DNA from: Eutreptiella sp. 'Long Island Sound 2002'
Lineage: Eukaryota > Protista > Euglenida
NCBI GenBank assembly: GCA_964036045.1
Contig: OZ038378.1
Span: 16,678,001 to 16,742,000 of the forward strand
Direction of reading: 5' to 3'
DNA: 64,000 nt
Below are positions 9,472-21,760 of the stretch, piece after piece. A model generated the notes under the pieces. That model had not been told where the DNA came from. It saw only the letters and a list, made by a program, of their open reading frames with translations, and did not search any database. The position numbers and the translations under genes are program-made. The stretch's first letter is position 1; each line of letters opens with the position of its first letter.

Positions 9472-10119
9472 TGGGGTAAAATGCATGGGCAGATCAGGGT
9501 AACCCTGCAGCCAACGTTCCTGAAAGGGAAAAAACCAACAGGAGGTGTTAAGGAACTAACAAACTCTTTTGGACCTGTTTTGACCCATTTCGACCACAAA
9601 AAGTCATTTGAACCAATTTTGACCCCTTTTGACCAATATACATATATACATACATATATACATATATATATATATATATATATGTACATATACATATATA
9701 TATATATATATATATGTGTGTGTGTGTGTGTGTGTGTGTGTATCTATATATATATATATATATATATATACACACACACACACACACACACACACCTATA
9801 TATATATATATATATATATATATATATATATATATATATATATATATAATGGGGATATATACCAGCGTCGTACGACACAGTACGACGCGTCGTACTGCGT
9901 CGTACTGTGTCGTATTGTGTCGTACTGTGTCGTACTGTGTCGTACTATGTCGTACTGTGTCGTACTGTGTCGTACAAGGTGTCGGGGCCCGACGCGTCGG
10001 GGATGTACGACGCGTCGTACAGTGTCGTACAAGGTGTCGGGGCCCGACGCGTCGGGGATGTACGACGCGTCGGGAGGTGTCGGGGCCCGACGCGTCGTAA
10101 AATCCCTACTTCGACAGTA
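9472..10119. mobile_element. Isolated right-end fragment of the KDZ transposon
   Basis: Matches 18493-19266 from TGGGGTAAAATGCATGGG to TTCGACAGTA. The internal microsatellite and decamer arrays differ in length and composition. Confidence 0.85.
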
Positions 10120-12613
10120 GTGATGCAGAACTGAATTGGGGATAGGAAAGGTCCACTGTCCGGAACTGCACTTGCTCATTCTCTACCAACAGACCGAAAG
10201 ACGTCTAGGACAGCTCTGCTGTTCCTGAGGAGTTTTCTTTCAACCGCTTTTCTTGCTTCGTTCTTGTCTCGCGGTTCCCAACGTGTGTGTGTGTGTGTGT
10301 GTCCGCAAGGACCAGTAGCAGAAGACCGTGCACCAACCACACCGGTGCGTCTTCTGTGGCGGCGCGCAAGAGGAGCAGTCCCACAGGCATTTCTTTTTAA
10401 TCTCACCCAAGACCTGGCTTGCGCCACCCTTTGTGGTGGTATCCGCGCCCTTGCCCCACAGCTCCACCCTGGAGACAGGGCCATCTGGATGGGGGCATGG
10501 GCGCGCCCAGCGGTGTCTTGGGCCGCAGATTTTCTCTGTCCTCCTCCTCCTCCTCCTCCAATCTGTCTCTCTCGTATCAATTCCCATGCCTGGGAGCACA
10601 TTCGTACACCCATCCACTTGAGTATCTGTCCGGGGTCGCAAACGCAAAAAGGTGTCGCTCCCAACGGAAGGGCGGGAGTTTGACTTTTCGCTCCCATTTG
10701 GGTGCATGCTGGCGCTAGCCAAGAGGGACTGTGCCCCGAAAAGGGGATGAACCTCTGCCAGTGGGGCAGCAAAAGGCATAAGATTCATAGCATTTCAATG
10801 AAGGGTGTCATGGATCTCAATATCGGCAGGTTTGAATGCGCAGATCAAAATTCAAAAGCGCCAACTTTTGGCGCCATGACATTTGCAGTAAGAAGTTGTT
10901 GTAAGAATCGCAGATACTGGGCGCATGTTTCTACCCTGTTTGGTGCTAATTTGCGTCTTTTGAGACGTGTGGGCCTATATTCTCAGCACGTTTGCTGATG
11001 CCGCTGCCGTCGCTTCTCCACTATGTTGACATGGTCGGCAGACGCCCTGAAAGGTAAATTCATGCCCTATGAAACTGGCCGCACTGTGTCATCATCAAAC
11101 AATGCTAATCCCGGACGATGCCAAATTTGTATTTGCTGCATTCATGCGCCACGTCTTCAAACAGGGAGACGGCCTCTGCCAGCAGAGCTGCCGTCGGGTG
11201 GAGTCCCTCTGGCTGCGCCCTCTGTCCGCCCATGATCGGCGGATGTATAAATACCCTGGTGGCAGGTCACAAGAGTGACCTGCCTGTGACCTGGTGCTCC
11301 TGCTGCGCACCGACCACCCCTGTGACCCCTTCCTCGCACTGGACTCCGATATGAGCGGGCTCTCCCTGCCAATCTCCTCCGGGCACGGCCATCTTGCAGG
11401 AAGACCATCTCAGCCCCCAAGGCCCACCTCCTGCTCCCCCACTGCCGCTGGTCTTTAGCCTGGGTTGAATGGCACTGGTCTTGGCCCGACACCTGACGGG
11501 ATCAGCGTTGGGGTGCCATCGTGGTCAATCAACGTTGATGCGAAACCGTCCTGTGGGGCATTTTGCGTTACAGTCCTCGCCCAGGCCAGTGCACGCTCTG
11601 TAATTGTCACATGCAAGACCCGCACGTGCGTTATGTGTGCCCCTTGCATCCTCTTCCATCCGCTATCAGTGCCCTTTGCGTGCTATTGGCATGCCCTGTG
11701 TGTACCCTGTGTATGCCCAGGGTGGGTGCCTGGGGTGCGTGCCCGGCACGTGCCTTGTGGTGCACGTCTTTTTTCCGGCTTTTGGGTCATTATAATCCTT
11801 CATGCGTTTTTTTTCAACCATCCGGTGACCTGAGCCCTATACTCTCGCCGCCATATTTTTCGTAGGATCCTCAACAATGGCGCCAGGCCATCAATTCAAG
11901 CCACCATTGCCTGCGCTGGGGCCGAGATGCTGTTCCGCGCCCTTGTACGGGCCAATTCTCTGGACCCTGATTTGGTTGAGGCGCAGGTCAAGGCTGCGGA
12001 CGAGATCACATTCTTTGGCCGCATCCGCTTCACTCCGTACGGGCAGCTGGACCGCCCCCCAAACATCGTCCAGTACGATCAGAGCAACCAACTACAAATT
12101 GTGTTCCCAGACGACGCCAAGACCATGGAATATGTGTACCCCGCTCCAAGTTTCAGTTATCGGGACTGCTTGGAGGTACTAAGAATCAGAGGGCTCGGGT
12201 GTCTGCAGGCAGGGCGCTGGGTTGAATGTTGTGAAGGGTTTGGAACGGTTGTGGAGGGTTGTGGAGGGTTGTGGGGGGTGATGGTGCTGGAACCAAATGA
12301 AGTGGCTGGGTTGACTTACCCATGGGAAGATCGACGGAGCACGGGCCCTAGACCTAGAACCCAGGCCCCCTCTGATCCCTGATGGCCCTTGTGCACACAG
12401 GGCTGTTCTTGAAGTGCCAGTGCCTGTTCTGCGGTGCTCAGGGCCGCGTTTGAACTGCAATTGTCCGTGCTCCAGTGCACAGGGCTGCGCACAGGGCTGC
12501 ATTTGAACAGCAATCTCCTGCACTCCATTGTACAGGGCCAGGTTTGAACTGCCAGCGCCTGTGCGCTGGTGCACCCCGCCACCCCGTGTACTACTCTGGC
12601 TCCCCTGCCCTAG
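10120..12613. repeat. 2494-bp host segment X, copy A (direct repeat of 19267-21760)
   Basis: All ORF-track translations recur identically at +9147. The match ends at CTGCCCTAG. Confidence 0.95.
11866..12175 (+). CDS. Exon 4 (copy A) of the PBP1-domain protein
   Basis: Acceptor TTTTTCGTAG|G complements the phase-2 end of exon 3 (AG+G = Arg). Encodes ILNNGARPSIQATIACAGAEMLFRALVRANSLD...FFGRIRFTPYGQ...VQYDQ...IVFP...YVYPAPSFSYRDCLE, matching the PBP1 C-terminal pattern 'G.i.Fd..Gq...vvQ...vyP'. Donor GAG|GTACT. Confidence 0.85.
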
Positions 12614-19266: not shown

Positions 19267-21760
19267 GTGATGCAGAACTGAATTGGGGATAGGAAAGGTC
19301 CACTGTCCGGAACTGCACTTGCTCATTCTCTACCAACAGACCGAAAGACGTCTAGGACAGCTCTGCTGTTCCTGAGGAGTTTTCTTTCAACCGCTTTTCT
19401 TGCTTCGTTCTTGTCTCGCGGTTCCCAACGTGTGTGTGTGTGTGTGTGTCCGCAAGGACCAGTAGCAGAAGACCGTGCACCAACCACACCGGTGCGTCTT
19501 CTGTGGCGGCGCGCAAGAGGAGCAGTCCCACAGGCATTTCTTTTTAATCTCACCCAAGACCTGGCTTGCGCCACCCTTTGTGGTGGTATCCGCGCCCTTG
19601 CCCCACAGCTCCACCCTGGAGACAGGGCCATCTGGATGGGGGCATGGGCGCGCCCAGCGGTGTCTTGGGCCGCAGATTTTCTCTGTCCTCCTCCTCCTCC
19701 TCCTCCAATCTGTCTCTCTCGTATCAATTCCCATGCCTGGGAGCACATTCGTACACCCATCCACTTGAGTATCTGTCCGGGGTCGCAAACGCAAAAAGGT
19801 GTCGCTCCCAACGGAAGGGCGGGAGTTTGACTTTTCGCTCCCATTTGGGTGCATGCTGGCGCTAGCCAAGAGGGACTGTGCCCCGAAAAGGGGATGAACC
19901 TCTGCCAGTGGGGCAGCAAAAGGCATAAGATTCATAGCATTTCAATGAAGGGTGTCATGGATCTCAATATCGGCAGGTTTGAATGCGCAGATCAAAATTC
20001 AAAAGCGCCAACTTTTGGCGCCATGACATTTGCAGTAAGAAGTTGTTGTAAGAATCGCAGATACTGGGCGCATGTTTCTACCCTGTTTGGTGCTAATTTG
20101 CGTCTTTTGAGACGTGTGGGCCTATATTCTCAGCACGTTTGCTGATGCCGCTGCCGTCGCTTCTCCACTATGTTGACATGGTCGGCAGACGCCCTGAAAG
20201 GTAAATTCATGCCCTATGAAACTGGCCGCACTGTGTCATCATCAAACAATGCTAATCCCGGACGATGCCAAATTTGTATTTGCTGCATTCATGCGCCACG
20301 TCTTCAAACAGGGAGACGGCCTCTGCCAGCAGAGCTGCCGTCGGGTGGAGTCCCTCTGGCTGCGCCCTCTGTCCGCCCATGATCGGCGGATGTATAAATA
20401 CCCTGGTGGCAGGTCACAAGAGTGACCTGCCTGTGACCTGGTGCTCCTGCTGCGCACCGACCACCCCTGTGACCCCTTCCTCGCACTGGACTCCGATATG
20501 AGCGGGCTCTCCCTGCCAATCTCCTCCGGGCACGGCCATCTTGCAGGAAGACCATCTCAGCCCCCAAGGCCCACCTCCTGCTCCCCCACTGCCGCTGGTC
20601 TTTAGCCTGGGTTGAATGGCACTGGTCTTGGCCCGACACCTGACGGGATCAGCGTTGGGGTGCCATCGTGGTCAATCAACGTTGATGCGAAACCGTCCTG
20701 TGGGGCATTTTGCGTTACAGTCCTCGCCCAGGCCAGTGCACGCTCTGTAATTGTCACATGCAAGACCCGCACGTGCGTTATGTGTGCCCCTTGCATCCTC
20801 TTCCATCCGCTATCAGTGCCCTTTGCGTGCTATTGGCATGCCCTGTGTGTACCCTGTGTATGCCCAGGGTGGGTGCCTGGGGTGCGTGCCCGGCACGTGC
20901 CTTGTGGTGCACGTCTTTTTTCCGGCTTTTGGGTCATTATAATCCTTCATGCGTTTTTTTTCAACCATCCGGTGACCTGAGCCCTATACTCTCGCCGCCA
21001 TATTTTTCGTAGGATCCTCAACAATGGCGCCAGGCCATCAATTCAAGCCACCATTGCCTGCGCTGGGGCCGAGATGCTGTTCCGCGCCCTTGTACGGGCC
21101 AATTCTCTGGACCCTGATTTGGTTGAGGCGCAGGTCAAGGCTGCGGACGAGATCACATTCTTTGGCCGCATCCGCTTCACTCCGTACGGGCAGCTGGACC
21201 GCCCCCCAAACATCGTCCAGTACGATCAGAGCAACCAACTACAAATTGTGTTCCCAGACGACGCCAAGACCATGGAATATGTGTACCCCGCTCCAAGTTT
21301 CAGTTATCGGGACTGCTTGGAGGTACTAAGAATCAGAGGGCTCGGGTGTCTGCAGGCAGGGCGCTGGGTTGAATGTTGTGAAGGGTTTGGAACGGTTGTG
21401 GAGGGTTGTGGAGGGTTGTGGGGGGTGATGGTGCTGGAACCAAATGAAGTGGCTGGGTTGACTTACCCATGGGAAGATCGACGGAGCACGGGCCCTAGAC
21501 CTAGAACCCAGGCCCCCTCTGATCCCTGATGGCCCTTGTGCACACAGGGCTGTTCTTGAAGTGCCAGTGCCTGTTCTGCGGTGCTCAGGGCCGCGTTTGA
21601 ACTGCAATTGTCCGTGCTCCAGTGCACAGGGCTGCGCACAGGGCTGCATTTGAACAGCAATCTCCTGCACTCCATTGTACAGGGCCAGGTTTGAACTGCC
21701 AGCGCCTGTGCGCTGGTGCACCCCGCCACCCCGTGTACTACTCTGGCTCCCCTGCCCTAG
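19267..21760. repeat. 2494-bp host segment X, copy B, continuing into unique flank
   Basis: Starts GTGATGCAGAAC and ends CTGCCCTAG, then continues GACCTTGCTG rather than into transposon sequence. Confidence 0.95.
21013..21322 (+). CDS. Exon 4 (copy B), duplicate with the same splice sites
   Basis: Same sequence as 11866-12175 at offset +9147. ORF translations 11927..12382 and 21074..21529 are identical. Confidence 0.85.

Follow-up and report, generated by a model that had tools for sequence, protein, structure and literature searches.

How does a host exon come to stand twice beside one transposon, each copy starting at the very base after a transposon end? The question is raised by a stretch of 64,000 nucleotides from the euglenid Eutreptiella sp. 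'Long Island Sound 2002' (GenBank assembly GCA_964036045.1, contig OZ038378.1, positions 16,678,001 to 16,742,000 of the forward strand; hereafter the window, numbered from its first letter). Here a complete KDZ-like DNA transposon lies between two copies of a segment, X, which carries an exon of a receptor-like gene, and the first copy is itself preceded by a broken right end of such an element. We hold with high confidence that the duplication is real, very young and mediated by a transposon end. It was probably made, very recently, by the transposon's own left end, and the first of the two resulting transposon copies was later fractured. Observed directly in the DNA are the two novel junctions, the absence of a flank and of a target duplication, copies that are identical, and an element family that is young.

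The duplicated block

The ends of the complete element were set with two independent insertions of the same family on other contigs, L002 and L003. With these ends, the segments of the duplication are as follows.

9472-10122 (+): R', a fractured KDZ-like right end of 651 bp, the counterpart of 18493-19269
10123-12611 (+): X copy A, 2489 bp; the first 180 bp are the end of a retroelement tail, the remainder host intron and exon
12612-19269 (-): the complete KDZ-like transposon, E, AGTGCTGTCGG...CGACAGTAGTG, without a target-site duplication
14104-17313 (-): the transposase open reading frame (ORF) of E, 1069 amino acids, intact
19270-21758 (+): X copy B, 2489 bp, passing without a break into unique DNA, D

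One single block, window 9472-12613 and 18493-21760, is duplicated. In self-BLAST, 9889-12613 and 19036-21760 are 99.8% identical without gaps, and 9472-9975 and 18493-18992 are 90.6% identical, the mismatches being confined to microsatellite and 10-mer arrays. The host part X shows no variable column in 2489 bp when the two window copies are aligned with both copies on contig ctg9991 of a further assembly (ENA ERZ25074135). Both copies of X begin at the base directly after the ...CGACAGTAGTG right terminus, and copy A stops at the left terminus. A preliminary reading made by eye, the sequence-only reading, had described X as present twice, each time after a KDZ right end, with copy B continuing into unique DNA, and self-BLAST and the alignment of X agree with this description. 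Two of its measures have to be changed: its length of 2494 bp for X becomes 2489 bp, as L002 and L003 move the element ends by 2-3 bases, and the block reaches further back than the right end, where it had been supposed to begin: its abrupt boundary in the alignment (9472/18493) lies within the element, by 651 bp in copy A and by 777 bp in copy B.

Unequal crossing-over between two transposon copies or direct repeats could draw on 114-nt units (family D4) that are directly oriented in both element ends. It is contradicted because copy B runs into unique DNA: element sequence is found neither after copy B nor elsewhere in the window, and an exchange via the end repeats would fuse two elements with no X between them. 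Since nothing transposon-like follows copy B, recombination between elements is excluded, as the sequence-only reading had already argued, and unequal crossing-over in general is scarcely credible.

The KDZ-like element and its ends

The left end reads AG-TGCTGTCGG... and the right end ...CGACAGTA-GTG in all copies compared, with the right termini of the window at 10122 and 19269. L002 and L003 match the window copy at 98.2% and 99.3% identity, which, along with the intact transposase ORF, marks the element family as young. The terminal inverted repeat, AGTGCTGTCGGAA against the reverse complement (C)ACTACTGTCGAAG, matches at 9 of 12 positions and is kept in the three copies, and subterminal 10-mer arrays lie at the element ends in inverted orientation. 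The element therefore has defined termini, which KDZ elements show with or without short inverted repeats. Published KDZ target duplications measure 7 bp in Kyakuja and 8 bp in Zisupton (PMC12730594); that of L003 (GCTGGGAG, 8 bp) lies in this range, and that of L002 (GTCATTGTG, 9 bp) is one base longer than published. The flanks of the window element show no target duplication when compared at the corrected ends (CCTGCCCT on the left versus ATGCAGAA on the right), so that this claim of the sequence-only reading stands.

The sole Pfam match of the transposase is to KDZ (PF18758) and is sub-threshold (E 0.0035; 17.5 bits versus a cut-off of 26.6 bits; profile positions 79-171 of 217). A profile search for annotated KDZ relatives of the transposase returned self-matches only. 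The ENA assembly ERZ25074135 holds the exact transposase protein (P0003, on ctg9991) and two proteins of at least 90% identity, and the loci of the three are L001, L002 and L003.

An LTR-like (long terminal repeat) reading of the layout, as [A B] C [A B], was rejected: C and A together form a complete element with terminal inverted repeats, structured like the copies elsewhere.

Two further repeats were noted within the element. A unit of ~55 nt, partly palindromic (GGGGCCCGACGCGTCGGGG core), occurs in direct orientation at both element ends (9969-10082, 12649-12762 and 19116-19229); its copies at 9969 and 12649 now bracket X copy A, and recombination between them could remove copy A again. 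A 168-bp tandem repeat (window 13036-13546; L002 14164-16229; L003 13768-14782) is highly variable in copy number, with 3 units in the window and far more in L002.

Two novel junctions

The duplication is bounded by two junctions, one on a transposon terminus and one in the interior of a retroelement.

12612-12613: junction J1, where X copy A ends and the exact left terminus follows; AG is common with the sequence after copy B
21759-21772 (+): a look-alike of the left terminus, AG + GACCT + TGCTGTC
9471/9472: junction J2, retroelement interior joined to KDZ interior, with 0 microhomology (alignment and flank comparison)
4142-4615 (no strand): satellite array accompanying the Penelope-like family (self-BLAST), also adjoining the Penelope-like copies L004-L006
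4618-9471 (+): P, the body of a Penelope-like retroelement, cut off at 9471 (GIY-YIG match; homology to L004-L006)
6937-9165: the reverse transcriptase (RT) ORF of P, 742 amino acids, belonging to a 59-member protein cluster

Apart from the 2-nt AG ambiguity, J1 lies on the exact left terminus. A random breakpoint would fall within 2 nt of it in about 5 of 9000 cases, and because chance so rarely places a junction there, the action of transposase at the left end is a reasonable cause.

The ancestral order of the region can be read from other copies of the retroelement. L004, L005 and L006 (3 of 3) match the window exactly to 9471 and then run on into a shared tail, m (CCCCCGCCACCGCCCCC...), of 465-693 bp. 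In all three, m is followed by a segment with 90-96% identity to X 1-180, which starts exactly at X position 1 (ATGCAGAACTG); in L004, X 1-180 corresponds to 7310-7490 at 96% identity. Both right-end/X junctions of the window are one single insertion junction, ATGCAGAAC, and the site is uninterrupted in L004. Three other retroelement copies run P-m-X and so show the ancestral order; the KDZ-like element entered between m and ATGCAGAAC, and the order before the duplication was P-m-[KDZ]-X-D. The present order is P/R'-X/KDZ-X-D, with R'-X in the former place of m, and m was not found anywhere in the window. The 9471 junction was also considered as an insertion of the retroelement into the transposon, which is ruled out by the three other retroelement copies extending beyond 9471.

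Several features of the retroelement family deserve mention by themselves. Its copies contain direct repeats resembling LTRs, and a satellite array that varies (window 4142-9471 and 10123-10302; L004-L006); the array is upstream of the body in the window and L005, and downstream in L004 and L006. In L005, the tail and the X-like 180 bp stand on either side of the body, the two occurrences being 95% identical. A tRNA-like stretch (GGTCTAGTGGTA ... GGTTCGAACCCCGG) at 9380-9440, in the 3' part of the retroelement, is conserved in L004-L006, with ARAGORN and Rfam silent there; the tRNA and Rfam scans found nothing.

Replication template switching (fork stalling or microhomology-mediated break-induced replication) would produce the two junctions with no transposase, by a jump from P to 18493, copying of R'-X and a jump back to the element start. 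The 0 and 2 nt of microhomology at the two novel junctions are in keeping with it, and the long inverted 10-mer arrays and palindromic 55-nt units at the element ends could stall forks. However, the back-jump would have to hit the exact transposon terminus (~5e-4 by chance), J2 lacks microhomology, and the heptamer near the breakpoint, TGCTGTC, is not the switch point, GACCT being missing from J1. We consider template switching unlikely.

This heptamer is the core of the left terminus. The sequence-only reading had placed it just past the copy B breakpoint, and it is located at 21766, 7 nt beyond the end of X in copy B (6 nt when the shared AG is taken as part of the block). TGCTGTC occurs 6 times in forward orientation in the 64 kb, which gives a chance of ~1e-3 of falling within 12 nt of the breakpoint. 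Recombination via the heptamer was rejected on account of the same GACCT spacer. At the other outer breakpoint, AAATGCAT (at 18500) lies 7 nt inside 18493 and occurs also 11 nt inside the true left terminus, again with a positioning chance of ~1e-3. The two look-alikes may be traces of transposase binding, or chance. A 35-nt stretch across the 18493 breakpoint (18474-18508) is moreover repeated in inverted orientation at 22720-22754 (-), 1 kb downstream of copy B, at 88.6% identity.

The sequence around 18493 bears on a single-event explanation, a hybrid-end transposition in which the left end of one chromatid would be paired with a break or cryptic end in the sister's element at 18492/18493; end-joining of the flanks P-m and R'-X-D would then remove m, and the left end would insert after X. 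Such an event gives exactly P/R'-X-E-X-D in one event, and the placing of AAATGCAT relative to both the breakpoint and the true left terminus speaks for it, as does GGCAGAA before the break, which is loosely like the right terminus GACAGTA. The resemblance to a terminus is nevertheless weak (5 of 7 positions, with the register off by ~3 nt), and a loss of 465-693 bp at the donor-flank join is large for end-joining, so that this explanation appears doubtful.

Reliability of the assembly

L001 (ENA ERZ25074135, ctg9991, about 632-662 kb) is the same locus, and its layout equals that of the window over 22.7 kb. The two are set apart by the lengths of arrays and by a few short indels alone, and their unique sequence shows no substitution; L001 is therefore another assembly version of the same haplotype and not a set of independent reads. 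Its arrays are longer than those of the window by 206, 189 and 96 nt (sites 9958, 12883 and 19105), and an odd CACACA/ATAT stretch, apparently a garbled microsatellite (window 9773-9859), is missing from it; array lengths in the present assembly should not be over-interpreted. The right ends of L001 can be told apart by 1 substitution, two 10-mers and 4 nt of microsatellite. The sequence-only reading had taken the differing microsatellites of the right ends as an argument against an artefact; this is weakened by arrays that differ also between assembly versions, while the right ends of L001 are still distinguishable.

An assembly artefact would mean either that X is single-copy or that the assembly took an extrachromosomal E-X circle for part of the locus. 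The copies of X are 100% identical, both assemblies were probably built from the same reads, and end arrays that change in length from one version to the other are no certificate of two copies. On the other side, the end of X is the sole flank that the left terminus has anywhere; a junction of m with the left end, like m itself, is missing from the window; the join of X to the left end has no overlap able to cause a false join; and the right ends of L001 differ by a substitution and two repeat units. A haplotig or allele without the duplication was sought and none was found, and the exact proteins of the locus occur on one contig only, so that there is no competing assembly path. An artefact is, in our judgement, improbable.

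A probable course of events

The layout is best explained by a duplication made by the left end of the transposon, followed by fracture of the first copy; the order of the steps and their chemistry are what we infer. At the start, the KDZ-like element E was inserted in a Penelope-like tail in a long intron of the receptor-like gene, in the order P-m-[E]-X-D. In a first step, the left terminus of E would have been attached by transposase to a target on the sister chromatid or the homologue, 2489 bp past the right end of E itself. Such a joining would be a one-ended or aberrant strand transfer or, equivalently, the formation and re-integration of an E-X circle, and no normal two-ended hop. The product, [E-X][E-X]-D, would carry the signature of alternative transposition. 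In a second step, as part of that event or shortly afterwards, the upstream E would have lost its left 5.9 kb and the 465-693 bp flank m through a blunt end-joining deletion, as from excision with abortive gap repair, leaving the fractured end R'. As an alternative route, the same left-end transfer may have taken place onto a chromatid that already bore a fractured copy.

The sequence-only reading had proposed alternative transposition of the hybrid-end or sister-chromatid kind. Its transposon-mediated character is retained, with J1 on the terminus and no target duplication. The specific hybrid-end model is not: it predicts P-m-X-KDZ-X-D, in which the upstream X would adjoin the old left flank at an excision footprint and no transposon sequence would stand between them, and instead the 651-bp R' precedes X copy A and m is gone. 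A further step is therefore needed, either left-end transfer plus deletion or a pre-existing fractured copy.

Several points weigh against the left-end origin. It requires two steps or one complex event, as a simple hybrid-end event gives no fractured end; it supposes in KDZ-type transposases a capacity for one-ended or inter-chromatid strand transfer; the KDZ assignment of the transposase comes from one sub-threshold Pfam match; and the copy number of X is the one that the assemblies give. Nor is the event common: a flanking duplication was sought in L002, L003 and three copies of a second family (L010-L012) and none was found, leaving the window copy as 1 of the 6 KDZ-like elements examined in two families.

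It is tentatively conceivable that KDZ-type transposases in this organism regularly carry out one-ended or inter-chromatid transfer, producing recurrent tandem duplications of genes or exons that can be traced in the sequence. Were this so, such duplications would feed the expansion and decay of receptor gene families, and the look-alikes at both outer breakpoints may mark a transposase-guided choice of target or break site.

The duplicated exon and its gene

The gene affected by the duplication is represented in the window by the following exons, which encode an ectodomain of the periplasmic-binding-protein (PBP) type.

299-3993 (+): upstream exons of the PBP-type ectodomain, at about 299-514, 1122-1501 and 3298-3993 (tblastn with PBP homologues; tblastx and blastn versus the paralogue L009)
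11866-12175 (+): exon copy A, 310 nt, preceded by tcgtag and followed by gtactaag; C-terminal end of the PBP ectodomain
21013-21322 (+): exon copy B

The exon encodes the last ~65 positions of Peripla_BP_6 (275-340). It has 39 relatives, and in the full-length ones the matching stretch ends the PBP ectodomain and is followed by a class-C seven-transmembrane (7TM) domain or an adenylate/guanylate cyclase. In the paralogue locus L009, a cyclase ORF lies 5 kb downstream. A search of the 42 kb that follow copy B gave no transmembrane, 7TM, cyclase or other receptor domain; the host gene may be already truncated, or may continue with exons outside the window. When L009 was compared to see whether D continues X, homology was found in exons only.

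The exon is 1 + 309 nt long, so that with both copies included the second is read out of frame, as DPQQWRQAINSSHH...GP* (DPQQWRQ...GP*), for 34 codons. Translation confirms in this point the frame shift and the stop after 34 codons noted from the sequence; the 'normal mRNA' obtained with one copy and the 'secreted decoy' proposed at the same time are arithmetic plus speculation. The locus offers a concrete case in which to ask how an exon duplicated out of phase would fare in the unusual splicing of this host.

Some repeats and rearrangements in and around the gene were observed as well. L009 9281-9588 corresponds to window 3547-3854, in the region of the third PBP exon, and is inverted relative to the neighbouring exons, which indicates that one of the two paralogues is rearranged. 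Just downstream of the duplication (window 22889-24321 and 24867-25050) there are repeats of ~86-100 nt with a palindromic core, GGGGACCCCC, in at least 6 copies that are 62-83% identical. Further on, window 48028-48493 and 49996-50462 form a 470-nt inverted repeat (88.6% identity) with arms ~1.5 kb apart, which could be the ends of another inverted-repeat element.

Comparison with known systems

To our knowledge, natural and sequence-resolved tandem duplications made by transposon ends are few, and nearly all belong to hAT and P elements, the hosts being maize, snapdragon and flies. In maize sister-chromatid transposition and in Drosophila P hybrid element insertion, ends from different chromatids are used and one product bears a flanking duplication. 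The present locus shares with them the use of ends of different chromatids, as proposed here, and the flanking duplication, and it differs by the 651-bp right-end fragment before the first X and the missing m; their predicted product, P-m-X-E-X-D, is not what the window contains. Fractured or internally deleted elements (fAc, Ds and the deletion derivatives of P elements) arise by excision and abortive gap repair. Like these, R' retains a terminus and its flank junction and has lost the rest at a blunt junction; unlike them, it has also lost 465-693 bp of flanking DNA.

Alternative transposition of maize Ac/Ds makes tandem direct duplications, including three natural dhAT-associated ones in B73 (Zhang, Zuo and Peterson 2013, PMC3744419). 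In its signature (PMC3744419) the repeats number exactly two and each begins precisely from the transposon, the middle element is short of one target duplication, the first element has a target duplication on both sides, and a reciprocal deletion product shares the target site. The window likewise has exactly two repeats, each starting precisely from a transposon right end, and a middle element without target duplication (right flank ATGCAGAAC, left flank CCTGCCCT). A fractured element (compare fAc) stands beside a full one, their termini facing across the duplicated segment. In contrast to Ac/Ds, the element is KDZ-like and not of the hAT superfamily, the host is different, the left part of the first element is deleted together with its flank m, and no reciprocal deletion twin is seen, a single contig carrying the locus.

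Maize re-replication is known to yield products in which transposase has made one junction and end-joining, with 0-4 nt of microhomology, the other (Zhang et al. 2014, PMC4270019). As in such transposition-coupled re-replication and composite insertions, a terminus and its flank are duplicated here, with one transposase-type and one end-joined junction. That model has an unreplicated target and termini at both outer ends, whereas here the target is beside the donor and one terminus stands at a novel junction.

This kind of event is thus known from Ac/Ds and P elements in maize and flies and is not reported for the KDZ-like group; both the transposon group and the host are new here. The case is fresh, with no substitution between the copies, and the transposase group, met here in a protist, has been little studied; the two novel junctions are readable, and the ancestral order is given by sister repeats. 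Exon duplication by transposon ends would accordingly not be peculiar to hAT and P elements.

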